The position numbers were made by a program, and so were the translations under genes. A DNA stretch of 64,000 nt from Mizuhopecten yessoensis. Taxonomy: Eukaryota. Location of the stretch: NCBI RefSeq assembly GCF_002113885.1, contig NW_018479929.1, forward strand, positions 1-64,000. Reading direction: 5' to 3'. How positions within the stretch are numbered: the first letter of the stretch is position 1; every line of letters starts with the position of its first letter. Under the pieces are notes generated by a model, which worked only from the letters and a program-made list of their open reading frames with translations, ran no database searches and was not told the origin of the DNA. Positions 6,010-64,000 of this stretch are shown one piece after another.

Positions 6010-7000
6010 CCCAGATGCAGAAGCTGTGATGCTGAGTCGGCGTAGGTCGTCAGGTCGATAGTTCCAGTCTGATAACGGTCTTTCAGGGTGTCCAGGCGTC
6101 TGTCGATGTTGGCGTATCTCTTCTTTCGGGGTTGAGTAGTGCCTCCTGCATCTCTCTGGATCCGGCTGATGTCATTCACGTTCTGTATGTCCTTAAACGT
6201 CTGGATGATGGTGTAGATGTTGGGGTGGGCATGCAGTACTCTTTTCTTCAGTTTTCCGTGCCAAGCTTCCAGATGGTTGGTAGTTCCTTGGTTGGTAGGT
6301 CCTTATGTTGAGAAGTGTTTCCAGGTTGGTCCGTCTCCTTCTACCCATTGCTCTGTGACGTAGTCTGTGAAAAGCAGCACGGGATGTGATATGTCAGCAT
6401 CATCAGCATTTTCAAGGGTTTGGAACTAGACGTCTTCTATGCGGTCTCAGGGGATGAGTGGAAGAACAGCAGCTCGGCGGACAAGTAGTTTGACGTCATC
6501 GTTCTCACGGTACAGTGTCTGGAGTCCGGTTGACTTGGCCTTTCGCCAAATACATTGAGTGTAATGGAAAAAACAGCCTTTTATGTTGATTCCAGGGACG
6601 ACAATGCGGATGGCGTTGTGTGCTGCCACCTCAAAATCGATGAAGGCTGTTGTGGGTCGGAATGGAATCTGGAAGTTTGCCATGTGTTCCTGTATTAGCG
6701 TGAAGAAACGATTGTAGATAGCCTGGCTCTTTCCGGGAAGTAGTGCATATGTAACTGGGGTCATGATTCCTTCAATCTGTACGTGAATGCTGTAAATCTG
6801 GTAAAATATAGTAGGACAGGTGTAGAAGGTGCCGTCACTGAAGATTACATCGGAGGCTGCAAGTTCGGCCATGTTCTCTGATGTAGCGAATGCAATAATT
6901 CTGTTGTTCTGTTCATCGTCGTCGAAGAGGAGAAATGGTTCGCCTGTAGATGTTTCTGTCCATCTACCATCCAAGGTGATGTCGGTCAAGGTCTTTGGTA
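6010..7000 (-). pseudogene. MULE DDE transposase remnant (N-terminus missing, in-frame stops)
   Basis: Motifs DGTFYTCP..FYQIYSIH, YALLPGKSQAIYNRFF, DFEVAAHNA, GCFFHYTQCIWRK. Past the stop at 6447 it continues to DYVTEQWVEG and TTNHLEAWHGKLKK. Confidence 0.92.
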
Positions 7001-7250
7001 GCACACAATAACAGATAAAGTCACACAAGTTCACACAAATATGGAAATAAGTACAAGTTTTATCTGACAATAATTATAAGAGAAATCATACGAGTCTGAA
7101 AGTACAAGTTTAACTAATATCTATGTATCAAAGCACACAATAATAGATAAAGTCACACAAGTTCACACAAATCTGAAAATAAGTACAAGTTTTATATGAC
7201 AATAATTATAAAAGAAATCACACAAGTCTGAAGGTACAAGTTTAACTAAA
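7000..7250. repeat. Two about 132-bp direct repeats inside the MULE
   Basis: AGCACACAATAA(C/T)AGATAAAGTCACACAAGTTCACACAAAT at about 7000 and 7132. Confidence 0.85.
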
Positions 7251-43839: not shown

Positions 43840-44791
43840 TTATTTAATGCTCTGACGTGCCTTCCATAGGTTTTATATAAATCGATCTGTGACACGTAGA
43901 GGTGGGGTTATTTAATGCTCTGACGTGCCTTCCATAAGTTTTACATAAATCGATCTGTGACACGTAGAGGTGAGGTTATTTAATGCTCTGACGTGCCTTC
44001 CATAAGTTTTACATAAGTCGATATGTGACACGTAGAGGTGAGGTTATTTAATGCTCTGACATGCCTTCCATAAGTTTTACATAAATCGATCTGTGATACG
44101 TAGATGTGGGGTTATTTAATGCTCTGACGTGCCTTCCATAAGGTTTACATAAATCGATCTGTGACACGTAGAGGTGGGGTTATTTAATGCTCTGACGTGC
44201 CTTCCATAAGTTTTACATAAATCGATCTGTGACACGTAGAGGTGGGGTTATTTAATGCTCTGACGTGCCTTCCATAAGTTTTACATAAATCGATCTGTGA
44301 CACGTAGAGGTGGGGTTATTTAATTATCTGACGTGCCTTCCATAAGGTTTACATAAATCGATCTGTGACACGTAGAGGTGGGGTTATTTAATTCTCTGAC
44401 GTGCCTTCCATAAGGTTTACATAAATCGATCTGTGACACGTAGAGGTGGGGTTATTTAATTCTCTGACGTGCCTTCCATAAGGTTTACATAAATCGATCT
44501 GTGACACGTAGAGGTGGGGTTATTTAATTCTCTGACGTGCCTTCCATAAGTTTTACATAAATCGATCTGTGACACGTAGAGGTGGGGTTATTTAATTCTC
44601 TGACGTGCCTTCCATAAGTTTTACATAAATCGATCTGTGACACGTAGAGGTGAGGTTATTGAATTCTCTGACGTGCCTTCCATAAGTTTTACATAAATCG
44701 ATCTGTGACACGTAGAGGTGGGGTTATTGAATTCTCTGACGTGCCTTCCATAAGTTTTACATAAATCGATCTGTGACACGTAGAGGTGAGA
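43840..44791. repeat. 68-bp minisatellite, 14 highly similar copies (intronic)
   Basis: Unit TTATTTAATGCTCTGACGTGCCTTCCATAAGTTTTACATAAATCGATCTGTGACACGTAGAGGTGGGG with exact 68-bp period. Confidence 0.98.
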
Positions 44792-45410
44792 TTATTTACT
44801 TTCAGTCAACATAGTAAGCAATGCAAATAATTATTTAACTGTTATGAAACTCATAATTACATAACAGTATGTTCTTTATGTGTTGTTTTTTTTACCCGCA
44901 CAAAGGTATGACCTTGGAAGAAAATCAAACAAAATAATGTCAACAGTTTAATTGATTTTAGAATCGCACAGTAGATTAATTGGAATCGATTAGATTTCGA
45001 TCAATAATCGGAACAACACGAGTCGTCACGTGTATATTCACTGTACTGATTGATACATTAGTTCACACAGGATTCCTACATACGTGTACTTAAGACGGTT
45101 CTATCAGCGATAAGGAAAAACACCGCTGTCATTATTGCATATATATGATTTCTTATCATAGAATATCATTAGCTATGGCCTTTAAATCGTACTCACCAGT
45201 ATTTTTTTTTATTGAAGATTAATGGATAAATGTAAGCTGATTAGTAAACGTCAGGATTCCTAATACGAGTAATTTAACATGGTTAAATCATCTAGTGGAA
45301 CAATTGCAATACTTTACACGTGTTAGTATGAACTAAGGTTATGTTATACATTGGTTCAATTCATAATTGGATCACATAAATTATATTTGTGACAATTATT
45401 CCGCATGCAG

Positions 45411-45559
45411 AACCGCCGCCGGGAAAGATTAGTATCGAGACCATATCAAAGAAAATCCTTACAGGATTTATTCAACAAACTGCACAAACCGTACACGCTA
45501 TGAGGCACAAACCGATATCAGCAGGGTCATCACGTAGGACTGATCAAGTCCTAGGCGAA
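45411..45559 (+). CDS. Putative exon of paralog A (PPPGKISIETISKK...DQVLGE)
   Basis: catgcag| acceptor, open frame, GAA|gtaagt donor. Phase 1 to 0, compatible with the preceding micro-exon. Confidence 0.45.
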
Positions 45560-46775
45560 GTAAGTAGCCAAACTATGCTTCCTTTTACAACGTTATGTTT
45601 TCCCACCACTCATAGAAAATATTTAAAAAGCGTGATGCACAGTCATTGTTCGGATACTCTCAAGAGCGCCACCGTTACGCTAATAGAAAACATGAGCTGA
45701 TGATGCTTTTTTAACTATTGATATTACATGCGCTAATATAAAGCAGTTGATTTTTGAATGATTTATCTTAATCATTTATTAAGTAGTCGTGATGGTTATA
45801 CCATTGGAATATGGTTTGGAGATTTCATGCTTATTTACATATTTACTTTTCACATGCAACTGTCAATTCTCTGGCATGTCTTGCGCCATGTTGGAACTAC
45901 TTTAGATTTTTCGATTATTACAAACAAATCATGTCATGACGTAATTCAAACCTTGACGGAAAAGTTCTTTTTTTCCTATATTGACATTTGTCGCCAGAAA
46001 GACACGTTTACAATAAAAGCACGACCTTAGCACTCCAAAAGGTTTTCCTCACTTGGTTTCCGTGGGCGCCGCACCTTTTATTAATACGAAACAAATATAA
46101 TTTATTTAGCTAATGAATGTTACAAGCCAAGTTTGTGAAAATAATCATGCACTCGTAAGGAGGTTAAGTCTTTTGAAGATGAAGATACATCAATTATATC
46201 CTTTTAACATCCACTCTACTACCACAGGCAGGAAAAACTTGTCTTTAAACAACAATAAATTTATGCTCACGGGTTAACATTGTCTCACTCTTTCTTAATG
46301 GGAAGGATACTTAAGGTTAACAACGTTTCCCCTTTCCAAGCCTCCGGGGTACATCACCTCTGAACTGTATAACAGTTAGTGTCGTTGAGTCAGAACTTAT
46401 TGCTGAATATATTTAGAATCCCTTTAGCTGTTGACACGGACCATCCAGATGAGCTATACTGCTTTACAGTGCTACATATGGATCTGCCCAACCTCTGTAG
46501 GACTCAGCACACATTTAAGATATTGTGATAATACATGTGTTGCCAATAGCATAATGTGTATACACACATCCTAATATAGAAGTTGGCTATTCTAGGCTAG
46601 TTGGTTTAGACTAAAAACAAAATGTGAGAAGGAGGCTAGGAATAGTGGAGGAGAACTAGTAGGTTTGGCTTACAATTCTTGCTTATTTGTGTACATGTTT
46701 TATTAATAACGTTTTTCTATATGATTTTACAACCAAAATATCTTATTATGATAAGATATATGTTATTCACTGCAT

Positions 46776-47135
46776 ATCGTAATATTACATGCGGAATGGG
46801 AAGCACCAACTGCGTAGAGAAAACACGTATCCGGGAACTGGCAAAACACCAAACATTACAAAAGTCAATACAGATTCGGGTATTTCGTCTAATTTGCAAA
46901 GTGGAAAGCTTTCCGCTCTTACAGCGAAACTTGCAATTCGCTAGGGACATTCAAAAAAGGTGTCAGAATATAGTTGATAACGTTGATGGGATCCATTTTC
47001 CGAAGTACCCAAGACTCCTTGATCAACAAGAACTGACGTTATATATAGCTACGGGCAGTGATGTGGATGATATTTCACAAAAGATATCTACCATAATTGG
47101 TGACCATGATTACAGTGAAAAAATGGATGTTACAG
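46776..47135 (+). CDS. Putative exon of paralog A (unknown domain; acceptor position uncertain)
   Basis: Coding-like open frame (FARDIQKRCQNIVDNVDGIHFPKYPRLLDQQELTLYIATG) ending at the phase-1 donor ACAG|gtaaca. The 5' boundary is unclear: a mutated acceptor at 46775 or a weak phase-0 one at 46873. Confidence 0.45.
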
Positions 47136-47746
47136 GTAACAATGTTAAAAATAATACCTTTAGCATACCGGACATACCGACCCCAAAGCCGATTCAAATT
47201 ATATTTCTATAAATATAATTTCTGTTTTCGTACAAAAATGTGGCATTCATATACTAATAAACATGCATCACTAATAATCTTTGCCTTATAATATGTCTAC
47301 ACGGCTATGCCGTACACTTCAATCATGTATTCAACGAGTTGATATGATAAACACACCGACCGTACAGCCGCACGCTGAACATCCTCTCACGTTATCTGAC
47401 CCCGTAACTTCAGTACCAATGCTAAAATAGCATTTACACTTGAGCCTTTCAGCAAAACACGATCTTTGAAATTTTGGCTTAATTTTTCTGCCCCACACTG
47501 CCCCACTCCAATGGTTTTGTAGAAAAAAATGTAACAAAATAAGTTGGTCGAAGATATGTCACTTTTTTTGAAAATATAAACAATAAAAGCTTCACGAGAA
47601 AAACTTGAAACCAGTGCAAATATTATCTATATTTTCCGCAATGGTTGTAGTTCCTGCTGAAGAGTATGACATAAGAAACCTACAATATAAAATGATCTTG
47701 AAGTTGGGTCATACAATTAATAGATATAAATTACGTATTTTTTCAG

Positions 47747-47841
47747 AGAAATGTTTCAAAGGAGACAGTAAAATTGTGACACCTGAACAAGACTATTCGT
47801 GTCTGATTCTCTTTCTACACAAAGATGAGACGAACAATTCT
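47747..47841 (+). CDS. Putative exon of paralog A (EKCFKGDSKIVTPEQDYSCLILFLHKDETNNS)
   Basis: tatttttttcag| acceptor and TCT|gtaagt donor. Phase 1 to 0 fits both neighbouring exons. Confidence 0.55.
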
Positions 47842-48127
47842 GTAAGTAGTTTGATAAAAGCTTGAAAACATGAACATATCATTTCAGTTTATCTCTTGAA
47901 GCTATGGTATAGAGATTTCCATTTTACTTTAAATATCCGAAATAATGACATATGACCAAAAAATAATAAACAAATGAAAATTATTAACTTATTTTGATAT
48001 AACGTTGTATACAATTTTAATATAACTGTAAGATGTTTATATGTACAGTTATAGTTATGAGTGCGAATACACTTTTGCATATTCATGTTATAACTGAATA
48101 AATATTACTCTCACTTTTGTACTCCAG

Positions 48128-48169
48128 CATAGTCAGATGAGGATAAACATCAAAGGAAACAAATCATTG
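48128..48169 (+). CDS. Putative 42-nt exon of paralog A (HSQMRINIKGNKSL)
   Basis: cttttgtactccag| acceptor, TTG|gtatga donor, phase 0-0. Confidence 0.5.
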
Positions 48170-48303
48170 GTATGAACCGACTATATTACTGTCAAATGCA
48201 CAACATAAAACTAATCTCTTTGATCCCCAAACAGTCCAACAAATTAAATTTAACATTTATTTATACATCATCAATTAACTAGTCATTTTAATTTACTGGA
48301 CAG

Positions 48304-48669
48304 ATACTTGAATCATCGAAAGTGTTGCATGTTCCAAGTCCACCTGTTGTTGCGATATCCGGACAAAGCCAATCAGTAAAAGATTTCAGTGAAGAAACAA
48401 ACGGCCAGCCGTGCATTCGACGAAAACTTACGCATATTCTAGGCGAAGACCTGTTCACCTATGCAAAAGAAGTGCAGCAAAGCCATGATGAATATGAGGA
48501 AATAATCAAGTCTCCAAACCCTGACCAAATAACCATGCTGCGGAACACCAAGGAAGCTGTGACTGTATTGCTTACCCGAAGAGTGCTTCCGGACTGTGAA
48601 ACATCGGCAGCTGGTGGCTCTACTAAATGTGAAATTCCAGATGATATAGATTCAGCACTGAATGAGTGA
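48304..48669 (+). CDS. Terminal exon of paralog A: first about 57 codons paralogous to 61030-61200, then an unrelated C-terminus; protease domain absent
   Basis: SQSVKDFSEETNGQPCIRRKLTHILGEDLFTYAKEV aligns with SQSVRVFREETESRTCIRRKLTHILGEDLFIYAEKV at 61097-61203. Same gacag| acceptor. Confidence 0.7.
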   Translation: MLESSKVLHVPSPPVVAISGQSQSVKDFSEETNGQPCIRRKLTHILGEDLFTYAKEVQQSHDEYEEIIKSPNPDQITMLRNTKEAVTVLLTRRVLPDCETSAAGGSTKCEIPDDIDSALNE

Positions 48670-51600
48670 GGGTGTTTTTTTGGCTTAAAACATAATTCTT
48701 ACTGCAATATAACTTTTGGTAAAAAAATAATCCCTATTCAGAAGACCAGTTATACTATTTTGTCAAAAGATATTGGGAAACAACTACATAAATAAGAATA
48801 TGAAGCTTTACAACATGTTGATTATATATCTAACCTGTGTTTAATATGCATAAATTAAACTATGTGATGGTATTGAATTTCCAAATTCATCAGTGGATGG
48901 CCTTGTGAGATACAATGAACTTTTTGGCCTGTATCTGTTGGGTGCGGTAATTTAATCCCATCAAATGTTTATACATGTTTATATATATTGTATATGTCTT
49001 TTCGGTATTAAAATAAAAGGTTAGAATTTAAACCATTAGATTCAATTATAATAAAAATAGGTATTAATAGTTGTTTCCCCTATTTGATTATACCAACTTG
49101 TTTATATGTGTTTGTTTGTGTTCTAATGTCTATGGCTATACTTGTACCACTGTTTGTTACTATGTTTGGAGAGGGCTTAAATAGGATATGCCTGCTGCCC
49201 AATCCATTTGTCCTTTGACAATAAAGGTTATTGAAATTGAAATTACTGAGTGCCAAATAGAAAACCAATCGAATTAGTAGATTTGTTTCTTTTTCTTTTG
49301 ATTTTTGCACCCGTTCTTTACTTTGATTTATCTTTTTACTTGTTAAGATGTCTATTTAGGGGTTATATTTTTGAATGAAATATGCGTTGTCTGAGATTTG
49401 AATTTTTAGCAGTGTTTTAATATTGTTTTGTAGTGTGATAATTACATTTACTACTACTAATCTTAATAATCGTTTCAACATAAATCATTTTTGATCCCAA
49501 TTTGTTTTTGCAACCTTATTTATTTTGATAAATAATATGTACAAATGTGTAAATATATGCGTTAACACTTGTGAATAGGTCGGATGTATTGAGTATTTGC
49601 TTTTGCTTATTCATCGTGTATTTTGTATCTTAATCGTGATTAAAAATGTGTTTCCCGTATAGTGCCGTATTGTCAATGCAGTATTCCGAGTTATTTAAAA
49701 TCGTATATGACGCGTTACATGTCTACTTTGTATTAGGGTTGCTGCTTCCACCTTCAGATATAAAAACTGTTTCCTTGAAAAAAAAAGAAAAACCTTCAAT
49801 AAATAATTTATTAAACTGTCTTTACTCAGAAAAAGTTATTTTGAAACGAACTATGTTTGTTTGAATATTTTGTACTGATGTAGTACGGTAAAGTCTGGGA
49901 TATTTTTATCTTCATCTTTATTTTTAATAAACAAATTATTGTCTTAAACATATAAAATATCGGTACAAAAACATACACTATTATCGTTCATTCACCATCT
50001 TGAAACTAAGTTCCTACTTATTATCCTTATCTATATATGAAGTTAGAACATTACATGACATTGCATCAAAATAAGACTCTAGATCGAGGAATATAGAATA
50101 AAAAACATCTAAAATTTTATTTTGTTATCTTTTTACCGAAACAAATGTGACCTTCTTTGTGATGGCGTGAACGGTAGAATGAACAAGTGTGGCAACTATG
50201 ATTAACGCGCTCGATGAAAAAAACATTCGTTGCACAGCGAACAACTATTATATTTTTAAACTTGATGATATTTCTCGTCATATTCGCGCATTTACATACT
50301 GATTACGGTCAAACAGTAAGGAACAAAGCCAACATCGTTTACTTAAAAGACATAGAAATTTGCATCTATTGAATACGAGGTTTATCATCATTCCACTGTT
50401 GCGTAATTAGACGAGATTTGATCCAAGAAGTGTTACCTGTTCCAAGGTGTTGAAATTACGAACAATAGTTGTCTCCAGAATATTATGTATCGCTGAACCG
50501 TCTAGTCATGCGCCGTATTTCAAACAGGTATCAATTCGCCGAACCTTCTTTCACTGCATATATACGATAAATTATACGAAGTCACAGTTTGATAAGCTAA
50601 AGATGAAATTCTGTAAATATATACATGAGGCAGGTTGATAGTCTTGCATAAATGACTAATTTTATTCAATTTGTATCTCGTATATATTGTTTTTTTAATT
50701 CATTATTTTGTATCGCAATGAACGTATAATCTTCCATATATAATATGATTTTCAGAGAACGAATTTGTTATACTCTTTTTTCTTTGTTTAAATTCCCAGG
50801 GACGCATACAGATATATTTTTTTTTATTAAAATTGCATACTCGTATTCAATAGTTTTATTTCATCTTACATCTATATTTGTCATTTCAATATGAAGAGCT
50901 TTATTTTGAAGTGTTATCAATAAAAAATATATATTGTAATACTTGATTGAATTATTCAATATCAATTTTTTTTTTCAAATTGTTTGAAATTTTTTATTAA
51001 TAAAAAAGAATTATCATATTCATTTTTTTCTTTATGTCTTACAGAGATTGCATTGCTGTTGAATTTCAGGACGTGACAAATCTCTACTTTCCATCTGAAA
51101 GTTCCATCTTTATAATTTCTCAAGATTTGGTTATGTATTTCCATCAGAATCTTTATTTTACTTCCGTCTGCAAGAAACAGAAACGTATACAATATCAATA
51201 GAAAAGTTTGTAGCTATCAAAGTGATGACAATACACGAGGAATAATATAGTTGTTCCCAAACTTGGGTGTAAGACAGAACAATTTCCACTAAGAGAATAA
51301 GATTAATGTAATTTCACCTTTATGACTACTACGGCTCAACACTACGCTGTAAATTAAAGAAAATAGATATTTAGTCAGTCTTTTTAATAATATTCATCAG
51401 TTTGGAAATATGTAATATCAATGTTTTAATTTCTACACAAACTATGTACGTATTAAACGTATGGTATTTGTAACCTATCTGTTATAGTGTGTAGAAGCGC
51501 CATATCGATAGGCGAAACACTAAAGGTGATAGCTTATATCATTAGTCAAATTAAGAGATGAATTGAAAATTGTTTTGGTTAATAGTTTACAAGAAATAAT

Positions 51601-52719
51601 TATCCGTTCTTGAAATGTTTCTGAATAAGAATAATTTAGATAAAACTAGTATTAAAAGACATCCATCATATATTCGAAGTAAACAACCTGAAATAAAGAA
51701 ATGAAAAGAGATTGATATATTTCTTATCGATAGGAAACGGTGATCACAGACACAGTCGTTAACATTTATGACACATGGAAATCATATAGAACCAGGTCAC
51801 CTAGTAGTCAACAGAGCTATCAATGTATGATTTTAAACATATAAAACAATCTGTTGTATCAGACAAAATAGTGATAACATAAACTCAGGTACATTACTTA
51901 TACTGAATATGAATAGACTTCTTTCGGTTGTATATACAATACTGTTTCCAATTATAAAAATATAAAATGTGTGAAAATAATCCTAGACATTTCCTTTAAT
52001 GTTACTATGACTTTACAATTATAAGATAAACGAGGACTTTGATAAAAAGGCCTGCAGACATTTAACGTACTGTATATGTAGCAGGTGAGAAAACTCTTCC
52101 TACTCTTTAACCAATAGTTTTATGTTTCCATTAGTGTGACGGATTTATTACTATACCCTTATAACATAAACAGTTATCATGTGCTTTTTAATCAATATAA
52201 TTCAAGAAACCGGTGAATTCTTTTAATCTAAATTTCGTATAACAAAACGATATTTAAATAGTGCCCTATAGCAATCTTACCCCCGTCTTTGCCATACCAT
52301 AACAATATATGTTAACACATTCTCCAACTGGAGTCGGGCGTCTGGTGTTAAAAATAAGCGCCGAATGATGACAACAAACACTAAGACGTTACATGTTGTA
52401 CACAACTATACATGGACGCTACAAGACATTTGTCTTCAAAGACAACATGTTTATCCTATATTTACCATCAAAACATTTACAATATCTTTCCTAAATTCAC
52501 TCAGCGTGGTATTTTCCATCTGCTTCTTATCGGCTCGGCTATGAATCCTCTCTCCTTTGCTCATTCGAAAGAGACTACATATATAAAAAAGACCTTTATT
52601 TATTTAACTACAATTATGAAGCAAACAAGTATGTGATGTGGGTCGAGAAAATTCATGTGATCGGGCAGGTGATCCAATTTCTTTTCACGCCCGATCGGGA
52701 GGTTGGACCCTGGCTTTGT

Positions 52720-52805
52720 TCGTCAAAGTATTCACTGCATCAGGCTAGTAAACCAGAGGTTACGGGTTTGAGCTCTGGCGGAGACATTGGAACTGATTAT
52801 TTTTG
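52720..52805 (+). mobile_element. Degenerate tRNA-derived SINE fragment
   Basis: GGCTAGTAAACCAGAGGTTACGGGTTTGAGCTCTGGCGGAGAC resembles a tRNA anticodon/T-arm (B-box) region. Confidence 0.4.
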
Positions 52806-54287
52806 AGTGAGAATATCATTCTACGCAATAATAACACATTGCCCGATATAAAATAACTGTATTCCCGAAAAGTATCTTATTTATATTTTATCGTACATAC
52901 ATGGATGAATAGTACATAACATACTGTAATGTACGTACATGTAACAAGCTAGCGCGTTATCAACTGCTCCAGCAAATCATCCCAATTAAAGATAACAAGC
53001 TAACGGGTGTGATTGGTATGAGTATGAGTAAAGTGAACGACATTGACCTTGTACTGATTGATACCGGCTTAGTAATCGGAAAAGAAATAGACATTCTCGG
53101 TATATGCTTTAAATATAGCTGTTCGTAGATAAAGTTATCTCCACTGATGATAGACAGTCGAAACCGCATGTTGATAATAGTATTTTGAACCTTAATGGTG
53201 AAACCAGATAAAAGGTAGGGTCATTTAATATTTCGAATTAACGTTGACCTCTTTTGATGACATTGGTGTACATTTTTGTCTTTATTTTTACATCACGTCA
53301 CACTGCCAGATATGTTTTTCCGCTGCAAACGGATCAATTTATAATGGTTCATTATATTAAGAATATCATTGGGAGAATTTGTATGCCATAATTGTCTTTC
53401 AATTGACATTTGAGAAATTAGTTTACCATTATTTAATTTGACTATCGTGTTTCTACCTAAATTAAAAAAACTAAAATGCAAGATTACAACTAGCAAAAGC
53501 GTCAGCAGCAACGTACCATGTCACTATATCAAAAGGTAAGAAATGTCGTTTATAGAATATTGACTTCAACTCTGAAAAAAACAAAGATAAATCGATAACG
53601 ACGATTAAAACAGTTCAACCTTTATGAGATGGTTGGTTGTTTAAAGCACCTTTCGTTTGTCGCCCTTTTTCTCATAAAGTACTTGGGCAATAGTTCTTTT
53701 ATTTTAGTTGTAAGTCTCCCTTGGTACTGAGATGAGTATGTTGATTTTACAGTTTGACACAAAAACAAGATGACTGTGGCATTGACAATAATTATTTGTA
53801 ATTATTATTATTATTTATGATAATGAACTGAAGTCTCTTTTTAGGCTTATCTGATCTGCTGGTTCTTTGTTATGTACAATATCAAATTATTCGTGCTTTT
53901 CTTTATACATTATTATAAAATAAGTATGCTAGTACAAAGGTCGAACGACTGCCCCACTTTGAGTGGATGATATCGCAAACAGCAGTTTGGATATTTGATG
54001 AATAGTTTGACAAGATACTGTTGAAATGAATCAATCCAAAAATAAGAAAATTATCAGAGATAAAACTGCCTATCAGTAAAAATATAATACCGCACGTTAT
54101 CGTGGTGTGCTTTCTAACACTTAAGTGAGGAAAAATCTTTTACAAAAATTCAACTTTGTTTATTTACCAAAAGAGCACGTCAGAGTAAGTCAGAAAATAC
54201 ATGACATGTTATAATGCTATATTTTCAACATGATCAATACAGTTATAAAACTTAAGCTATTTTTAGCCAATTTTAATCTGACAAAAT

Positions 54288-56790
54288 ATGACAATAACAG
54301 TTTTGATGTTTATGAATTAAAATCCGCGCATTACTATTGTACATGATTGATAACTAGTACTTTAAGACTTCTGATTATCTATCTTTCAATTTCAAGTGTT
54401 TAGTTGCGTATTTATGACATCAACATATAACTTACGTGATGCGTAATGTCGGATCTGATGAGCGTGAGTAGAGATTGTATCGTATTGATAAAAAAAAGTT
54501 GTTGAAGTGAATTCGTGTTTCAATTTACATGGTCCCCTGGTAATTCGGGTATTATTGATATTTATAAAGTTGACTAAATGTAATATTTATTGCCTGTCAA
54601 TTTAAAAATAGTCATCATTCAATAAAATATTAGCTGAAAGTCTTTGCTGTTATCTTTCGTATAATCTATTTACATCCTTTTGGTGACGCTGTTATACATT
54701 TGTCTTAAACAATCTTAATTTCTGATAATTCCTGAAGGGAAAATTGATAGTATGAATAGTTCTGTCTAAGATCGTCTGCGTAAATGTAAGAAAATATAAT
54801 GTAGGGATTTAAATGCTAACCTTGGTTCAATTTAACGATTATGTTCTCCATAATTTCCAAAATGATTTTTGTACAAAAACGAATTAATTTGTGACACAAG
54901 AGTAGCTTATGACAATAACCGTTTTGATGTTCATGAATTAAAATCCGCGCATTACTATTGTACATGATTGATAACCAGTACTTTAAGACTTCTTATTATC
55001 TATCTTTCAATTTCAAGTGTTTAGTTGTCTATTTATGACATCGACGTATAACTTACGTGATGCGTAATGTCGGATCTGATAAGCATGCGTAGATATTGTA
55101 TCGTAATGATAAAAAAAGTGAATCCGTGTTTCTATTTACATAGTCCCCTGGTAATTCGGGTATTATTGATATTTATAAAGTTGATTAAGTGTAATATTTA
55201 TTGACTGTTGATTTTGAAAATAGTCATCATTCAATAAAATATTCGCTGTATGTCTTTGCTGTTATCTTTCGTATAATCTATTTACCTCCTTTTGGTGACG
55301 CTGTTATACATTTGTGTCCATTTTACCGAAGATAAATCTACCAGAGACGATTTGGGTGAAAATAGTCAAACACAAGTATATCGATTATTTATCTGAGAGA
55401 GAACACATCTTATGTATGTATTCCACAAATAATGCTCGTACAGTGGTCATTTAAAAACAAGTTTTTTTTTTAGGTTTCCCGAAGGGAAAATTAATAGTAT
55501 GAATAGTTCTGTCTTAGATCGTGTGCGTAAATGTAAGAACATATGATATAGGGATTATTTAACGATTATGGTCTCCATAATTTATAAAATGATTTTTGTA
55601 CAAAAACGAATTAATTTGCGACACAAGAGTAACTTTTCTAAATACAATCCATAAATAGTAAAGGTTAAATTTTGGTGGAAAATAGTCTAAAAACAGAATC
55701 GAATTTTTATCATAAAATCATGCAATATGCTACTGGCTTGTGTAATTTTTAATACCTATACACTCTTGTTTTTAGGATTCGAAAGTAGGATTTATTTATT
55801 TACCAAAAAATGGGCTTAACAAGTAAAGTTTTCATGACATGCCATAATATCTTATCAGGATGATAAATTACATCAATAGATAATCACCAAAAACTTTTAC
55901 CTGAACTATTCTCATTAACCAAAAACTAAACCAAACCACCTGGTGTTATTTTACTATGTAAATATGTGAAAACAACCGTATTGATGTTCTTGATTTAAAA
56001 TTCACGCATTAATATTATTTCGGAGAATTGATAGCTGATATTATCAGAATTCTTGGAACTTATCTTTATATTTCAAATATATTGTGTCAAATGAATTTCG
56101 TCGACATATAACTTACGAGCAACGTAACGGGGACCTGATAAGTAAAAATTGATTTATCGATTTATTGAGCATCAATAAGAAGGTGAAGGTAGTGTCCTCG
56201 AACTCAGGTTACTCGAATGCCCCTCATTCGTCGAACAGTTTGTTTGGTCCCGGCCGAGTTCCTACATGTTCTTTGTTAAGTAACCCCGGATTGTATGTTT
56301 ATCGAATTCTTGGAACTTATCTTTATATTTCAAATATATTGTGTCATATTGATGACATATAACCTACGAGTAACGTAACGGCGGACCTGATCAGTAAAGA
56401 TTGATGTATCGATTTATTGAGCATCAATAAGAAGGTCAAGGTAGTGCATTCCATTATATCGTAGGAGCCACCATAAATATGTGTATCGATTTATTTGAAA
56501 AAACATGCCCCATGGAGATTCAAAAAGATATTGACAAAGACATCTAAGCAGATCAGAAAGTTCAGTAAGAATATCGCTGTCATGCAGACAGATATATGCC
56601 AGCTTATCTTAAAGCAGGATAAACCCTAATATCATCATGATCTCCGTTATTGATAGTTATTTTTGTATATATATTTTTTAAATTTTGACTTCAGGGTAAC
56701 TTTTCTAAATACAATTTATAGGTTGTAAAGATAAACTTATGGTTGAAAATAGTCTGAGAAAGAAAGATAATCGATGTTTTACTATATACC
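54288..56790. repeat. Tandem about 621-bp repeats (two close copies plus diverged/partial copies)
   Basis: ATGACAATAAC.GTTTTGATGTT.ATGAATTAAAATCCGCGC at 54288 and 54909. Diverged copy at about 55965. Partial copies to about 56790. Confidence 0.85.
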
Positions 56791-56794
56791 TTTG

Positions 56795-58057
56795 TGTAAG
56801 ATTCACACATGTAAAAGTCATCCGGTAGCGTGTTCAAGCAGGTCGGGTACACATGATACACTCGTGGGAAAACAAACAAATTATGTAACGAGAACCGACC
56901 GGGATTGATTAAATACTGGTTCCCTAGAACATAAGGCAAACACGGTTCAAACAGTATATGCAATGTATTTACAATGCATAATTAGTACACAATACACAAA
57001 ATCAGATTGGTTTTCTCTCTCTCTCACTATCAACTCGCTAACGAATGACATGTAATATGTACATATATATATCTAACTAATAATACAAAATGCCATATAA
57101 ACACCATAAAGTCTCTGTAGCTGGTTGGACGCTGTTGTGTCGTGTCCAATGTTGATGACGGCGTCCTCCCTTAGACTTGTCCAATCTCAGTGAAGTCCCC
57201 TCCAAGCTCACAAATACATATATAACGTAGCGGGTCACACAGATCCAGCCGTTACGGGTCACACAGACCAGTGAAACATAAACAGGTCACACAGACCAGT
57301 CAACTCTCAGTCACACAGACTAGTGGGACACAGGTCACACAGACCAGTCCAATGTACGGGTATACAGTGTCACCCTCTCCATGGCCACACAGGTCCAGGT
57401 AAGTATATACAGTAATAGGTCATACAGACCAGCCAAATACAAGGGTATTAGGTTTTACCCTCTCCATGACCACACAAGTACAGGTAGGTATATATGTAGG
57501 AAAAGGGTTTCTCTGGGAACGTTCAGTCTCGCGTCATCGGGATCCGATAGTTGTAGAGTACCAAAATGACCATCTGTATTTGTCCTTCCGTTACACGAAC
57601 GTCGACGGCCCAAGGACGAAAAGCTACAATATACGTATGCCTTAACTAAATAGCTATTATACACGTAACGATAGTATTATACTGGTATACTATTTAATTA
57701 CAATTATTGATTAAGACAATATAATCTATATCTGAACTGGTTATATATAGTATTTAAGCAGTAATGCTAGCACTAAACATTTCATTATGCTGAACAAAGC
57801 TAACAGTGATATTGTTCACGCTTTAACTGGTCCAACGCCTATATATGAGTCAATACATTTGTTATAATAAATCTGATAAAACTTAAACAAGTTTAAACTT
57901 ACCGCTAGCAGCTATTTGCGCTCCAACATTCACTACACGGTCCGCACCCGTAATGTCCGCCCTTCTCACCTGTAGTACACTTATTAGCGCTTGCCTAACT
58001 TACCTGTTAAAGTTACCTGGCTGGAAAGCGCGCGATATTCAAACACTGATATTTACA
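56795..58057 (-). mobile_element. LTR-like region abutting the Gypsy pol fragment, containing a nested 712-bp LTR-like element (56884-57595)
   Basis: Outer ends TGTAAGA...TTTACA. The inner element has a perfect 7-bp terminal inverted repeat TGTAACG...CGTTACA and internal GGTCACACAGACCAGT repeats. No TSDs recognised. Confidence 0.55.
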
Positions 58058-58790
58058 GATACAGATACTTCTGGAATTTCTGGATCGCCCAGACTTTTGC
58101 TAAGCATTCCTTCTCAACGACTGCATACGCTCGCTCACTGTCCTTCAGTTTCCTACTAGCGTAGGCCACCGGGAGCAAGCAGTTGTTTTCCAACTGTAGC
58201 AGAATTGCGCCTATTCCATAGTCCGAAGCATCTGCTTGGATAATAAACTCTTCCTCCAAATCCGGCAATTTCAAGATTGGGCTCGTGGCCAACAGCTTCT
58301 TCAGTGCCTCAAACGAATGCTCCTGCGGTTCATCCAAAACCACTCGATTTGGCAATCCTTTTTTGGTCAAGTCCGTCAGTGGAACTGCAGTCACTGCAAA
58401 ATTAGGAATACATTTTCTGTAAACCCTACTAGTCCTAGAAACGATCTAACTTGTTTCTTGGTTTCCGGCCTAATTGCATCCATGATCGCCTTCACTTTGT
58501 CAGGGTTTGGAAGTAGTCGTTGTTGTCCCACAATATGAACCAGGCATTCCAAACTATCAAAGCCCAGTGCACACTTTGTCTGTCGGTCTAGCTGTGAGAC
58601 CAGCGTCTCGCAATCGTGCACATAGTTCATGTAGAACTTCAAGATGTTCTCTCCATGACTTTGTATAAATCAACAAGTCATCCACGAAACTTTAAATGTT
58701 GCACATTCCATTTAGTAGTTTCCTTACCATACGACAAAAAGTTGCTGGTGAATTCACTAACCCAAAAGGCATCACTTCAAATTGGTTGAC
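58053..58790 (-). mobile_element. Gypsy/Ty3 pol fragment (RT-RNase H), degenerate
   Basis: MPFGLVNSPATFCRMV, FVDDLL, TKKQVRSFLGLVGF, PLTDLTKKG, DASDYGIGAILLQ, PVAYASRKL and EKECLA.VWAIQKFQKYLY. Confidence 0.95.
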
Positions 58791-58799
58791 CTTTATTTC

Positions 58800-61700
58800 A
58801 ATTTTCGTCCTGTGTGTTTTGTGGTCTGCGCATGCGCTCGATACTAAAACAATTGAAAAGACAAAAAATAGATATGAGCATGACACAAACATGGCAATGT
58901 TAGACATATGTTCTTCATTTGGTTTCCCCTTTATTTTTCAAATTTCACTGATTAAAACTACATCCGTGTAGAAATGGATGTGCGTGCATCAAGAAAATAC
59001 ATTTTTGTTAAATGTTCCGAGACAATTATACTAAAACGGCATCTATTTTTTTTTTTTTTAATATTTACAATTGAATTTTCAAAAGGACATAGAATTGCTT
59101 CAACATGTGTATCAAATGTGTTGATCTGATGTGAAATTATATTTAATTCCTCTATTTATTTCGTTGCTTTGTGTATTATCTACTCAACAAATGCGGAAAC
59201 AAGAACCAGTAAACCCCAATACATTAGAGATTTATCGCGCCGTAGAAAAACTATCTACATGAAACAACCGTTGTAAGTAAAACTGTATACCACCGTTAGC
59301 AATGCGTGTACCTGTATGTTTAAAAATAGAATCATCTGTAAATGACTCTTATTGTCAGGTTTGGAACAAATCCAACTACGCATATTGATATACTTTTCTA
59401 ACTAGCCTACCACAAGTATTATATAAATCGATATATGCTTTTATACCTTAAAAAACGCTGGTATCCTAGACACCTTCGATATGAGACTGTTAACTTTCAG
59501 TCAACATAGTGTACAATGAACGGGCTTTTTTTTTTTAGCTATTATGAAACTCATCATTACACAACATGGCACTGAATGTTCTTCATGTGTAGTTAAGTTT
59601 TGTTACTCCCCTTTTTCCTTTTTATTAGTAATGGTTAACTTTCTCCTGTTATTTTGTTATAATTTTAGAGTAATTATACCGTATTAAAACTATAATATAT
59701 CAACTATGAAATAAAATTATGACACTACTTATCAATCTTACAATAATGTTACATACTTTGGTAATGTGGGGTTGGCCGTATCGCTCCTTAATGCTTCTAG
59801 TTTTAAGGTATATGTCACAAGGTTAGCCTTTAACTTATGTGAGCTTTTTTGGAACTATTGCGCCTCTTTTACTTGAAAAGCATTATGGATCTATTTATAG
59901 AAAGTTGACAACTGTCAGAGATTATACACTTAACATCAAAACAATCTTATAAGTAATTTCTTTTTATAACCTTACAGTTCGTTATTCCTTTTATCTCAAC
60001 ACAATATCCATATTTAATATATTTCAATTAACGCTGGTCACAAAGTAACCGTTGCTTTACCGTAAAGTTCTACCTAATTGATAGTATTTAGGATTAGGAG
60101 CTTGCTATATTTACTGCGAATATGAAGAGAGTTCATAACTACTGAATAAAATTAAATCGCACGTGAATCATACATATGTGAAACAAAGACGCTTCTATTT
60201 GATAAGAAAAATATACGGTTTTCATATTGCATACATATGATAGCTAATCATAGTATTTTACTAAAGATGGTCTTCAAATCGTTTTATCCGAGTTGTTTTG
60301 TTGAACATGAGTGGATAAATAGTCACTGATATGTAAAGCAATCTAGATGACTACTTTCTTAAAATGAATAATTCGAGATAGTTTCATCATCCTGTGGAAA
60401 CCTTTCATTTCTTTTATCATGATGTCAAAATGATCAGTTTGAATACATTGTTTGTTTGTTTATTTGTTTGTGTTTAACGGCCCATCGACAACTGTGATCA
60501 GTTAGGGCATGAATGCATGTAAATAGCAATATAAACCATTTTAAGGTAAATAGCACCAACAATATAACCATAATATTACCATCGCACTTTTGTGAGATAT
60601 TTAAAACATCTAAAAATATATTATATCAAATTCGCATGCTGCGATGCGTTTAACAAAATTACGCTTTTTTCAGTTTGAAAAAAGAATGCATGAGTCGATA
60701 TCAGTACCTTTACACTATGCTACTAACAAGGATAGGATAGATAAAATCACAGAAATAACATGAATGTTTAAATCATTGAGCTCATACCAAATGAAAAAAG
60801 TTGAATTTTATATAGAATAATGAAATGTTCAAGGAAAAAACTTAATAAACCCTTCTTCTTGAAGTAGTACCATTTACTTTGATACTCAACTCTAGTCCGA
60901 ACCATCTATCTTACTGACAAACACATAAAGTAAAACTGATTTCTTCGATCTCAAAACAGTCTAAAAAATCAATTTAAAACATTTATTTAGAAAGATCTTA
61001 TTGATATGCATCGTTAATGTCCTTGACAGGTACACGAATCATCGAATATAATGTATGTTTCGAGTCCATCCATTGATGTCGAGATATCAAAACAAAGCCA
61101 ATCAGTAAGAGTTTTCAGAGAAGAAACAGAAAGCCGTACGTGCATTAGACGAAAGCTTACACATATTCTCGGCGAAGACCTGTTTATCTATGCAGAGAAA
61201 GTCAGGATTTAATTCCGTAGCAAATTAACTGCTATGATTATATGTCTGCGCTTTCAATATTCTCTCTGTTACCTTTTCAGAATAAAAGACAGCGGCGTTA
61301 TGGCGTTTGGATTGCTTGTGGACCACTTTGTATTCCTTCTTGACTGAAAGTGCAGTGACCAAGTACAAAAAATTGCCACCCGAAAGATTATGAAACTTTG
61401 CAACAAACGAAGCAACTTCAAAGTACCTGTTGACGTGGTAGCAGTTTCCCAAAACTGTTTGACAGATACTGGTTTAGAGCAAGGCCATACAGTCAAATCA
61501 CTACACAGTGGGACTCTATCGGAATGGTAACAGAAGCAACCAAGCCAATCACCACAGAGACAACCAAAGAAGCAGACGGACCGACCACTTCAAATTCAGA
61601 ACAGAAAACTCACAAAAACATTGTCGTGGAAATAACTGCAGGTCATTTCTTTACACAAAACGATAACGCATTTTTCGTTAAGAATGGCGAAACTAAAAAA

Positions 61701-63260
61701 ATCGGGAAATGTCTCACAAGTCTACACCGTTCAGGAGACACTACGACCATCGCCATGATAGAACTCGACGAGAAGATGACAAACAGAGAAGATTGCGATC
61801 TTAAATTCAGAAATGAAACTGGTGAATCGTGTGACTGTGTTGTGTTTAATGGCACTCTTGCTTCTGGTACCGTAATGTACAAAAAAGGTGCTGCCACAGA
61901 AATGAGCGAAGGAATTGTGGCCAGCCCAGATTTTCGGCTAGTAGGACTTGTCGATACGCAGAAGGGTTATTTGATCAAAGGTCGAGATGATAGTGTTTTC
62001 TCTGAGGGCGGAGATAGCGGTTCTATTGTATTTACGTTAGACAACAAGGATACTGAAAAGAGAACTGTCAATCTAGTATCGATCGCTACGAAAATGATGC
62101 CAGATGATGCGGCCAGAATACTTGGTATCCCTGTAACTCTATCGTCCATCGTCCGCCTGGACAGGTGTATTGAAAAACTATTTGAGCTCAAGGGTGCGGC
62201 CGTACAGATGCATGAAAAGTAAAACACTGCGATATGCATGTTGTCTACGTTGCCCATTATAATACATACTTTTTTTTATCTTTGACTATTTTGCACACTT
62301 GCAAATCTTCAATCTAAATACATATTTGTTTTTCTTATTACTTTAACAAGAATACTAGCACGGTAGATCATTAGACATTTCTATTGCTTTGGTTTGTGTT
62401 ATAAGGTTCATGTACATCTATTAATACTGTGTCTTGTCCTTCTTTGAAAACTTTTAACTTCGGTGTAAGTATATATATAGGACTTGATAGAAAATAAAAA
62501 CATATCAAAGTAGTACATTTGTTACTCTTTCTTTTGATTTTTAGGCTGTTCGTCACTTTGATATCCGTTTACTTGTTTAAACATCTGTTTAGTGGGTATA
62601 TTTTTAAATGTAGTATACGTTGTCTGTGATTTTTCAATTTTCATCAGTGTTTTATATATTGTTTTGTAGTTTGATAATAATAATTTCTACATCTTATTTT
62701 AATAATTGTTTCAACATAAATCATTTGTAATCCCTATTGATTAAAAATAAATAAAAAATTGCAACCTTATTTGGTTTTTAAATTATATGTAAAACGTGTA
62801 TATATATATGCGTTAACAATTGTGAATAAAGAAAATACACAGCGAACAACAATTAATTAATTATTCTCGATTATAATTTTCGTTATGTTCGCGCATTTAC
62901 ATTCTTCTTAGAAAATGACACGGTCGAATGTTCCAGAAGTCGACATCGTTAACGTTATAGACAAGGCTATATGAATGTGTATCTATTAAATAATAAGAGG
63001 TTTGTCAGCATCCCGTTCTTATATAATTAGACATGAAGGATCCAGAATATGTTCCCAATTTCCAGATGTTAAATGTACGAAGTAATAGTTGACACCAGAA
63101 TGTTATGGCGCTAAACCGTGAAGTAAACATATATGGTAACGCGACGTATTTGAAACAGGTATCAATTCGCCGAACCTTCTTTCACTGATTATATATGCTA
63201 ATGTATACGCAGTGACGATTTTCTAAGATCAAGAAGGAATGGTGTACATGTATACATTAG
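58800..63260 (+). repeat. Segmental duplication copy B (paralogous to about 43240-50640)
   Basis: See the shared blocks listed for copy A. Confidence 0.88.
61030..62222 (+). pseudogene. NAL1/Ssy5-like trypsin-fold (PA clan) serine protease gene, paralog B; disrupted
   Basis: Exon from 61030 (frameshift at about 61070). Exon from 61281 (ttaccttttcag|) reads GVMAFG..VPVDVV..GHTV..SGTL[frameshift at about 61519]GMV..ITAGHF..YKKGAATEMSEGIV..FSEGGDSGSIV. In-frame TGA at 61345-61347. Confidence 0.85.
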
Positions 63261-63471
63261 CTGTTCAATAGTCTTGGTAAAATCATATATTTTGATATAT
63301 TTTTTACCTCCTATACATTTGTCTTCCGAATTCATAGAAAGAAAGACTTTTCTTATATATTTGTATATCTCAGTTTATACACACAGAGACGCATATAGGT
63401 ATATTCATTATAATTATATTCCGCATTCAATATTGTTCCATCATCTTGCATCTTCATTGTTCATTTAACAT

Positions 63472-63745
63472 GAAACGCACAAAAACATTATCGTGGCAAT
63501 AACCGCAGGTCATCTCTTTACACAAAACTATGATGCATTTTTCGTTAAGAATGGCGAAACTAACTTGTTTGACTAGTCGATACGCAGAAAGCATACTTGA
63601 TCAAAGGTCGACATGATCATGTTTTCTCTAAGGGTTGATATAGCGGCTTTATTGTGTTTTCATTTTAGATGTCCATGACGACAGGTGTCTTGAAAAACTG
63701 TCTGAGGTCAAGTGTGTGACCGTGCAGATGCCTGAAAAGTAAACA
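63472..63745 (+). pseudogene. Third, heavily deleted copy (C) of the protease domain
   Basis: Three collinear pieces match about 61605-61696, 61946-62040 and 62143-62229, including ..ACCGCAGGTCAT.. (TAGH) and the terminal GAAAAGTAA. Confidence 0.9.
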
Positions 63746-64000
63746 GTGCTGTTGCTTTACAAAGAAATAAGTCTACAAGTTCCGAATCGACTAAGAATAA
63801 GAAACAATTGTGTAAATGTAAACCAATTTTTCTCTTGAAACAAAAATAAAGAAAGCCCAGTGCTGAAGATCAACTTCGATTAATAATCACCGCACTTGCT
63901 GTCACTCAAAATAACTGTCTTTTCCCGTCAGTTTGATATGTATGTTTCCTTACATTGGTCACGGAATAATGTATGTTTTATTTTTGTTTTTCCAATTTGT

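Follow-up and report, generated by a model that had tools for sequence, protein, structure and literature searches.

NAL1 is known in rice as a yield gene, and the amino-acid sensor of yeast has Ssy5 as its protease, which is kept inactive by its prodomain until a signal removes that prodomain. To our knowledge, both are usually regarded as plant- or fungus-specific regulatory intracellular proteases. NAL1 is an oligomeric cage that degrades specific regulators, and its domain map and its catalytic triad of H234, D291 and S385 have been reported (PMC12012508); the rice NAL1 structures considered here are PDB 7Y77, 8HAS-8HAU and 8PME-8PN2. We examined a locus at positions 61030-62222 of a 64,000-nucleotide (nt) stretch of the Yesso scallop genome (Mizuhopecten yessoensis, contig NW_018479929.1, positions 1 to 64,000; hereafter the window), which an initial annotation had described as an animal gene of this protease type with introns, one that "may be inactive". 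We find that the locus is very probably an unprocessed pseudogene, made of the last two exons of a tandem duplicate of an intracellular serine protease gene of the NAL1/S64 group, as judged by comparison with its paralogs. The locus itself is an ordinary pseudogene of little importance. The family to which it belongs forms a branch of the NAL1/Peptidase S64 group in bivalves and brachiopods, one that evolves fast and has expanded in tandem. Literature searches turned up nothing relevant on NAL1 together with Ssy5, on animal homologs of NAL1 or on oyster Peptidase_S64.

Lesions of the window copy

Lesions were read by aligning window positions 60900-62300 to the closest paralog, locus L002 on contig C5316 (C5316:336460-338360), to which the window copy is 95-96% identical in exons and flanks alike. 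The locus begins with the first base of a penultimate exon and ends with the final base of a TAA stop codon (Table 1). The translation of its first exon piece, VHESSNIMYVSSPSIDVE..., aligns to the annotated paralog P0002 from residue 63 on, and its terminal exon is 95.2% identical to the intact 317-codon exon of C5316 (tblastn with P0002, E 1e-144). Between the two lies an intron remnant whose acceptor is also found in L002 and in locus L003, the translation of which is the exact C-terminal 317 residues of LOC110459873 (M. yessoensis). The first sign of a broken copy is its open frame of only 262 codons, where the paralogs have uninterrupted frames of 326-336 codons.

Relative to the paralog, the window copy carries a premature stop, a 1-nt frameshift deletion, a 12-nt in-frame deletion that takes out the catalytic Asp and, in this assembly, a 460-nt deletion across the exon-intron boundary. 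Residue numbers follow the family alignments, of which we used three: A2 (12 terminal exons with intact open reading frames (ORFs) from three scallop subfamilies), A3 (15 rows) and A4 (45 diverse members). H122, D160 and S250 are invariant in A2, and the deleted D160 is invariant in all 15 aligned family members. The window copy thus has an incomplete NAL1-type triad, with His and Ser kept and Asp deleted, and two further conserved positions are substituted.

These lesions change how the locus is to be read. What had been taken for introns between frame pieces are the TGA codon at 61345-61347 and the 1-nt deletion at 61500/61501, and the remnant at 61203-61280 is the sole real intron of the locus. 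Most of the motifs named in the initial annotation are present on the plus strand, with GVMAFG and VPVDVV lying in ORF pieces upstream of 61524 that are shorter than 232 amino acids (aa); its SGTL-G, however, came from reading the old frame past the 1-nt deletion. The motif is GSIGM in the subfamily of the window copy and reads DSIGM in the window after the frameshift. Likewise, TIAMI does stand at the expected position of the Asp motif and the Asp is missing, but TIAMI is the scar of the 12-nt deletion and not a substituted Asp motif.

The pattern of substitutions points the same way. The terminal exon differs from the C5316 paralog by 45 substitutions, distributed as 18, 15 and 12 across the three codon positions, and the Nei-Gojobori ratio of nonsynonymous to synonymous divergence (dN/dS) is 1.12 with a dS of 0.045. 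Between ORF-intact paralogs dN/dS is 0.44-0.91. The window copy is by this measure evolving neutrally, and with its lesions it cannot encode an active protease. Disabling lesions, a neutral substitution pattern and the retention of an intron remnant and flanks are together the marks of an unprocessed pseudogene, so that the wording "may be inactive" gives way to a pseudogene: the copy has a stop and a frameshift, lacks the Asp and, as assembled here, also bears the 460-nt deletion.

The duplicated block

Window positions 44000-64000 (about 20 kb) are collinear with C5316:321665-340046 at 84-97% identity. On C5316 this block holds an upstream tandem gene of the family with four exons and a downstream copy with only the last two, and 61030-62222 is the window counterpart of that downstream copy. 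The upstream gene of the window retains exons 1-3 without the protease exon: C5316:325216-326847, where that exon lies, has no counterpart in the window, and a dispersed repeat stands in its place. Both protease exons of the window block are dead. A third protease-exon remnant, at 63469-63739, is common to both blocks and is thus older than the block duplication.

Window positions 52000-56200, which are non-coding or unannotated, recur at 76-90% identity beside other family loci in contigs C2215, C2160 and C76438, so the protease genes were duplicated along with neighboring sequence. Two small unplaced contigs, C35780 and C37281, are 97-98% identical to the window and look like alleles of the window locus.

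Table 1. Features of the window locus, its surroundings and the corresponding block of contig C5316.
Feature	Position	Strand	Details
Penultimate coding exon, 5′ part (exon 3 of the four-exon family gene)	61030..61202	+	Acceptor CAG 61027-61029
460-nt deletion	after 61202	+	Relative to C5316; two-thirds of the penultimate exon (3′ part) lost, together with the donor and most of the last intron
Last-intron 3′ remnant	61203..61280	+	Polypyrimidine tract and acceptor CAG 61278-61280; 94% identity to the C5316 intron 3′ end
Terminal exon, disrupted	61281..62222	+	N-terminal alpha/beta module and chymotrypsin-fold protease domain; TAA 62220-62222
GVMAFG motif	61294-61311	+	
Premature in-frame stop	61345..61347	+	GGA in paralog, TGA here (G>T nonsense)
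VPVDVV motif	61423-61440	+	
1-nt frameshift deletion	between 61500 and 61501	+	From alignment to C5316
First Gly of GSIG/GTLG motif changed to Asp	61512..61514	+	GGC to GAC; Gly kept in at least 90% of the family
Longest surviving ORF	61524..62222	+	232 aa; starts at an internal Met of the protease domain; without Asp
Family-invariant Ala in VVAITAGH changed to Glu	61629..61631	+	Five residues before the catalytic His
Catalytic His codon CAT (TAGH), kept	61644-61646	+	H122 invariant in A2 and A3
TIAMI at the expected Asp-motif place	near 61740-61760	+	
12-nt in-frame deletion	between 61747 and 61748	+	Removes MHYD, including the catalytic Asp
KKGAATEMSEG	near 61880-61915	+	
GGDSGS	62007-62024	+	
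Catalytic Ser codon AGC (GDSGS), kept	62016-62018	+	S250 invariant in paralogs
Third protease-exon remnant	63469..63739	+	Three pieces, several stops; also at C5316:339515-339785
Upstream tandem gene of the window, exons 1-3	47057-47134, 47743-47832, 48304-48665	+	tblastn with P0002; GT donor 48666
Dispersed repeat of about 500 nt in place of the missing protease exon	48737-49243		Dozens of genomic copies, about 83% identity
RT RNase H-like LTR-retrotransposon fragment	58053-58394	-	PF17919, E 4e-32
ORF with MULE transposase domain	6447-7070	-	E 3e-11
C5316 upstream tandem family gene, four exons	C5316:323563-323637, 324245-324334, 324784-325146, 325487-326428		
C5316 downstream copy, only last two exons	C5316:336605-336967, 337317-338267		

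Recurrence of the lesions in other samples and transcription

The window stretch is present in DNA runs from at least five studies of the same organism, and we compared contigs from two runs of different studies (X3 and X8) with the window at 97% identity or more. The TGA and the 1-nt and 12-nt deletions all lie within contigs of both runs, which at none of these places differ from the window; the TGA is covered by X3 record 5 and X8 record 14 with every base agreeing. Because these samples share all three lesions, the stop, the frameshift and the Asp deletion are a property of the locus and not of the assembly.

A functional gene for a NAL1-like protease, either active or lacking its Asp, with the breaks explained as sequencing errors or short introns, is in our judgment very improbable. 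Against an uninterrupted paralogous exon, one break is the substitution of a single base and the other the deletion of a single base, neither being a GT-AG interval, and their recurrence in independent samples rules out read errors. An ORF of 232 aa that includes the His and Ser motifs does survive, and NCBI annotates a similar truncated ORF of 235 aa (P0001) at another scallop locus, but the catalytic Asp and two conserved residues have been lost from a sequence with a dN/dS above 1. Contigs of X15, a small run only guessed to be RNA, cover 61406-61572 and 61706-61912 and can be counted in favor of a transcribed gene; against it, one fifth of the reads of a raw RNA-seq run (X23) gave none on the stretch, the parts identical to C5316 included, although the presence of the organism in that run is unproven.

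Several observations weigh against the pseudogene reading in its simplest form. The 460-nt deletion is missing from the X3 and X8 samples: left-flank contigs of both runs continue directly into undeleted exon sequence, with 0 and 4 mismatches per about 300 nt against 12 for the C5316 paralog, and right-flank contigs of both have intron sequence immediately before the flank. The X3 overhangs at the deletion add up to its full length (114 + 346 = 460 nt), and the deletion joint at 61202/61203 is in no contig of X3 or X8. Hence either the reference animal alone carries the deletion or the assembly is at fault. In addition, a low-depth X15 contig carries an extra T after 61501 that restores the frame, while keeping the 12-nt Asp deletion. 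Given this contig, some alleles may be less broken than the window copy, and low-level transcription of the window copy may occur, given the X15 coverage. Finally, exons 1-2 were undetected upstream of the C5316 downstream copy (L002), whose exon-3 donor reads GA (L002 903-925, about 336962-336984) where L003 and the upstream gene of the window have GT. Given the missing exons and the GA donor, the downstream copy as a whole may at no time have been a gene in its own right. The C5316 downstream copy, which had no annotated protein among the search hits, may also be non-functional itself or consist only of alternative 3′ exons of the upstream gene.

The window block could also be a null allele of the C5316 locus, a haplotype so degenerate and diverged that the assembly gave it a contig of its own. 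We regard this as unlikely, though of all the readings of the locus that compete with a paralogous pseudogene it is the one to be taken most seriously. The two blocks share about 20 kb of collinear sequence, the same gene order and the same downstream remnant, and bivalve genomes are highly heterozygous with presence/absence variation; yet the blocks diverge by about 5% (dS 0.045) with many large indels, and near-identical window-type sequence was found in DNA runs of at least five studies. X3 and X8 additionally hold contigs 95-99% alike beside the window-type ones, which are untyped and could derive from C5316 or another close copy. The resemblance of C35780 and C37281 to alleles of the window locus favors two paralogous blocks over two haplotypes.

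Affinity to NAL1 and Peptidase S64

Single-exon sequences, database proteins and alignments served as queries, and the pieces flanking the stop and the frameshift were searched separately. Curated Pfam cut-offs are 26.1 bits for Nal1_C (PF25819), 23.6 for Peptidase_S64 (PF08192), 20.6 for Trypsin (PF00089) and 27.6 for Trypsin_2. Single sequences carry little signal: the 232-aa window ORF scores below threshold with Peptidase_S64 (12.9 bits) and Nal1_C (12.7 bits) and retrieves from PDB sequences only chance matches to major histocompatibility complex chains (E about 0.5), and single scallop sequences are likewise below threshold (Nal1_C E 0.008-0.07, Peptidase_S64 0.004-0.04, Trypsin 0.02-0.04). 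Profiles are more informative. Searched against all PDB sequences, the A2 profile finds NAL1 at E 0.005 and solely NAL1 chains below E 0.03, and the A4 profile finds NAL1 at E 2.4e-13, followed by the S1E enzymes 2sfa (6e-6) and SGPB (0.012). The A4-NAL1 match falls in two stretches, GTLG...H and K.G..TG.T.G...GDSGS, and HMMER aligns the catalytic His and Ser of the family with H234 and S385 of NAL1 (numbering of PMC12012508, by way of the NAL1 construct offsets).

The Pfam results for A4 members agree with the profiles. At E of 0.01 or less, 27 of the 45 members match Peptidase_S64 (best 2.7e-8), 18 match Nal1_C (best 1.4e-8) and 8 match Trypsin_2. Three relatives exceed the curated cut-offs: P0082 for Nal1_C (31.8 bits), and P0058 and P0016 for Peptidase_S64 (24.7 and 23.9 bits). 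The Pfam check that the initial annotation had proposed was therefore passed by these relatives but by no scallop member, and NAL1_N (PF25608) was absent at E of 0.01 or less from the 45 A4 members, with their upstream module included, and from full-length proteins. The assignment to a NAL1/S64 type rather than to S1A was borne out, NAL1 being the only strong profile match, and the best profile match was neither an S1A or HtrA protease nor one of a virus or transposable element (TE).

Two candidate classes were set aside on their scores. For S1A trypsins, Trypsin reaches 14-15 bits in two paralogs only, below its cut-off, and a hydrophobic N-terminus was not found. For HtrA/Deg proteases, the two Trypsin_2 scores given, 17.3 and 23.4 bits, are below the cut-off, and there is no PDZ domain.

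Predicted structures place the family in the same neighborhood. The AlphaFold model of the C5316 terminal exon has a predicted local distance difference test score (pLDDT) of 68 with A2 and of 90.3 with A4, the latter with a predicted template modeling score of 0.79. In the better model, a beta-beta-alpha-beta module (residues 6-55) is followed by two beta-barrels and a C-terminal helix. Two beta-barrels and an invariant His-Asp-Ser order are features of the PA clan, and the family has both, the window copy being without the Asp. In Foldseek searches of the PDB, rice NAL1 came first with either model (E 6.5e-10 and 2.1e-10). Both modules are included in the alignments, which run over 340-380 columns with a root-mean-square deviation (rmsd) of 12-21 A, indicating that the placement of the N-terminal module either differs from that in NAL1 or is unreliable. 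VIA-align on the protease domain alone (model residues 61-317) gave Z 20.7 for alpha-lytic protease (190 residues, 14% identity), 20.1 for SGPB (181 residues, 14%), 19.7 for NAL1 (217 residues, 18-20%) and 15-16 for HtrA/Deg (163-179 residues, 12-17%). No S1A trypsin, viral or TE protease or FAM111 chain was among the best 50 structural matches.

The affinity to NAL1 has two points against it: scallop members lie below the Pfam cut-offs (Nal1_C 12.7-19.1 bits, S64 13.6-16 bits), and NAL1 is tied by Z-score with alpha-lytic protease and SGPB. The family could thus be of S1E type (alpha-lytic protease or streptogrisin), perhaps acquired from bacteria, or of the animal FAM111 type, and not specifically NAL1/S64-like, which we consider improbable. 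The Z-scores of the S1E enzymes are slightly the higher and 2sfa and SGPB are the next profile matches after NAL1, but the NAL1 profile E-value is seven orders of magnitude better than that of any S1E chain, the NAL1 structural alignment is the longest and has the highest identity, and the Pfam matches go to Nal1_C and Peptidase_S64, with Trypsin_2 matched by just 8 of 45 members. FAM111 is represented by no chain among the listed matches of the A4 profile or structure searches, and bacterial acquisition sits poorly with conserved four-exon genes and with the eukaryote-like contigs of metagenome-derived relatives. Fold alone does not separate NAL1 from S1E, and sequence profiles do. Taken together, the placement of the family among the serine proteases of trypsin fold (PA clan), with NAL1 and Peptidase S64 as the nearest known families, largely holds.

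The family in the scallop and in other animals

A six-frame search of the scallop genome (987.6 Mb, 82,659 contigs) with the window ORF gave 23 matches at E of 0.001 or less, the best at 5e-150, a similarity that chance cannot explain. The family has at least 20 loci in the Yesso scallop, in three subfamilies, with a conserved four-exon gene structure. Intact paralogs, for which the initial annotation had proposed to search, do exist, namely the 12 ORF-intact terminal exons with their invariant His-Asp-Ser triad. These paralogs show, on comparison of their coding sequences, an intact triad, weak purifying selection and tandem expansion accompanied by gene death.

Beyond the scallop, an exhaustive search of representative proteins with A3 found at least 579 at E of 1e-3 or less, 186 of them at 1e-10 or less. 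We looked up 30 representatives, and the 26 that were named are all annotated as "uncharacterized" or "hypothetical". Named relatives come from scallops (Mizuhopecten, Argopecten), oysters (Saccostrea, Ostrea), Pinctada, the unionid Potamilus, Mercenaria, Mya and the brachiopod Lingula, so that the lophotrochozoan family suggested in the initial annotation is found in bivalves and one brachiopod, which is as far as the named spread extends. Word-index protein searches returned scallop proteins and two others only, with the scallop genus Pecten among the names, and a word-index search with A4 added almost nothing. Two relatives are derived from metagenomes, and their contigs show a sparse, eukaryote-like gene layout. 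We thus have, from sequence comparison, a sizeable and previously undescribed animal branch of the NAL1/S64 group.

The predicted proteins carry no sign of secretion. A crude Kyte-Doolittle scan found no signal peptide and no clear transmembrane segment in 13 full-length relatives, in keeping with the initial annotation, and windowed hydropathy is modest in 12 of the 13, the exception being a Lingula protein near its C-terminus. With no hydrophobic N-terminus or transmembrane segment, the family proteins are probably soluble and reside inside the cell. Upstream of the protease lie regions of 185-450 aa, and a Pfam search of these regions and of the N-terminal exons found no family. An Atlas feature search with P0002 residues 60-260 scored at most 0.83 (0.79 for the NAL1_N cluster), which is too low, and it was not used as evidence.

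A few relatives join the protease to other domains. Ostrea edulis LOC125649015 (P0122) has a RING finger and B-box (TRIM-like) with the protease domain at the C-terminus, and P0154, of 1881 aa, has DUF4559, KH, three macro domains and WWE in a PARP14-like layout, again with a C-terminal protease. One relative record has an integrase core and leucine-rich repeats and may be a chimeric gene model. A protease belonging to a TE or virus is scarcely credible: TE fragments flank the window locus (48737-49243, 58053-58394 and 6447-7070), but the family consists of host-type multi-exon genes with conserved splice sites, annotated as cellular in several bivalve genera, its fusions are to RING/B-box or macro/WWE modules and not to gag or pol, the protease exon was not seen to lie regularly within units bounded by LTRs or TIRs, and no viral or TE protease was among the best 50 rows of each structure search.

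Members of this cellular family also appear to be transcribed. Several Argopecten members have complete 640-aa products on contigs of only 2.2-4.2 kb. A multi-exon product of this size on such short contigs would reflect spliced transcripts, which suggests that several Argopecten family members are expressed.

Predicted function

An intact gene would encode an intracellular serine protease of about 500 aa, with a helical region at the N-terminus, followed by a small beta-beta-alpha-beta module and a compact domain of chymotrypsin fold bearing the His-Asp-Ser triad. By analogy with NAL1 and Ssy5, intact members may be regulated endoproteases that cleave particular substrates in the cytosol or nucleus, and the N-terminal regions of the bivalve proteins would perhaps exert a similar kind of control; regulation by a prodomain is one form that we infer for the family.

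A role of the family in stress or immune signaling is possible. Lineage-specific expansions of immune-type genes have been described in bivalves and brachiopods, the protease family itself not being described there (PMC8195603), and the expansions, high dN/dS and TRIM-like and PARP14-like fusions that we observe would fit this pattern. A more far-reaching and rather doubtful suggestion is that the intact relatives are lophotrochozoan-wide, rapidly diversifying NAL1/Ssy5-type endoproteases that serve in bivalves as a signal-released immune or stress effector or switch. It draws on the tandem expansion with frequent gene death, the dN/dS of 0.44-0.91 and the RING/B-box and PARP14-like fusions. 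If true, the family would be the equivalent in animals of the regulatory proteases of plants and fungi. The animal branch provides comparative material for how the NAL1/Ssy5 type of protease is regulated, and it adds a candidate effector family, of predicted function, to the lineage-specific gene expansions of bivalves and brachiopods.

Comparison with known systems

The window locus resembles duplicated pseudogenes in tandem clusters in its intron remnant, flanks, lesions, dN/dS near 1, duplicated block and degraded neighboring copy. Its sole unusual point is a 460-nt deletion that is not common to two other samples.

Among proteases, the S1E enzymes (alpha-lytic protease and the Streptomyces griseus proteases) are by Z-score the most similar compact two-barrel folds, over 181-191 residues. 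Unlike the family, they are secreted and bacterial, with signal peptides, disulfides and a folding pro-region, and they match the profile much more weakly (6e-6 to 0.01, compared with 2e-13 for NAL1). Yeast Ssy5 (S64) is a chymotrypsin-like endoprotease that works inside the cell and has an extended non-catalytic part at its N-terminus, as the family proteins are predicted to have. In the family nothing resembling the Ssy5 prodomain was detected, and matches between the family and PF08192 lie around the substrate-pocket and GDSG region, covering only the last 60-110 of 692 model positions.

Rice NAL1, a serine protease of chymotrypsin fold that forms a hexameric cage, lacks a signal peptide and resides in the cytosol or nucleus; the family proteins are likewise predicted to be intracellular serine proteases of this fold. 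The GTLG...H, K.G..TG.T.G and GDSGS motifs of the two align, and the small alpha/beta module before the protease of the family occupies the position of the ATP-binding domain of NAL1. The two are only 18-20% identical, however, with NAL1_N not detected in the family, no rigid-body superposition of the N-terminal module (rmsd about 21 A over about 370 columns) and 185-450 N-terminal aa in the family that are unrelated to NAL1. Unlike NAL1, the family is animal, tandemly expanded and fast-evolving.

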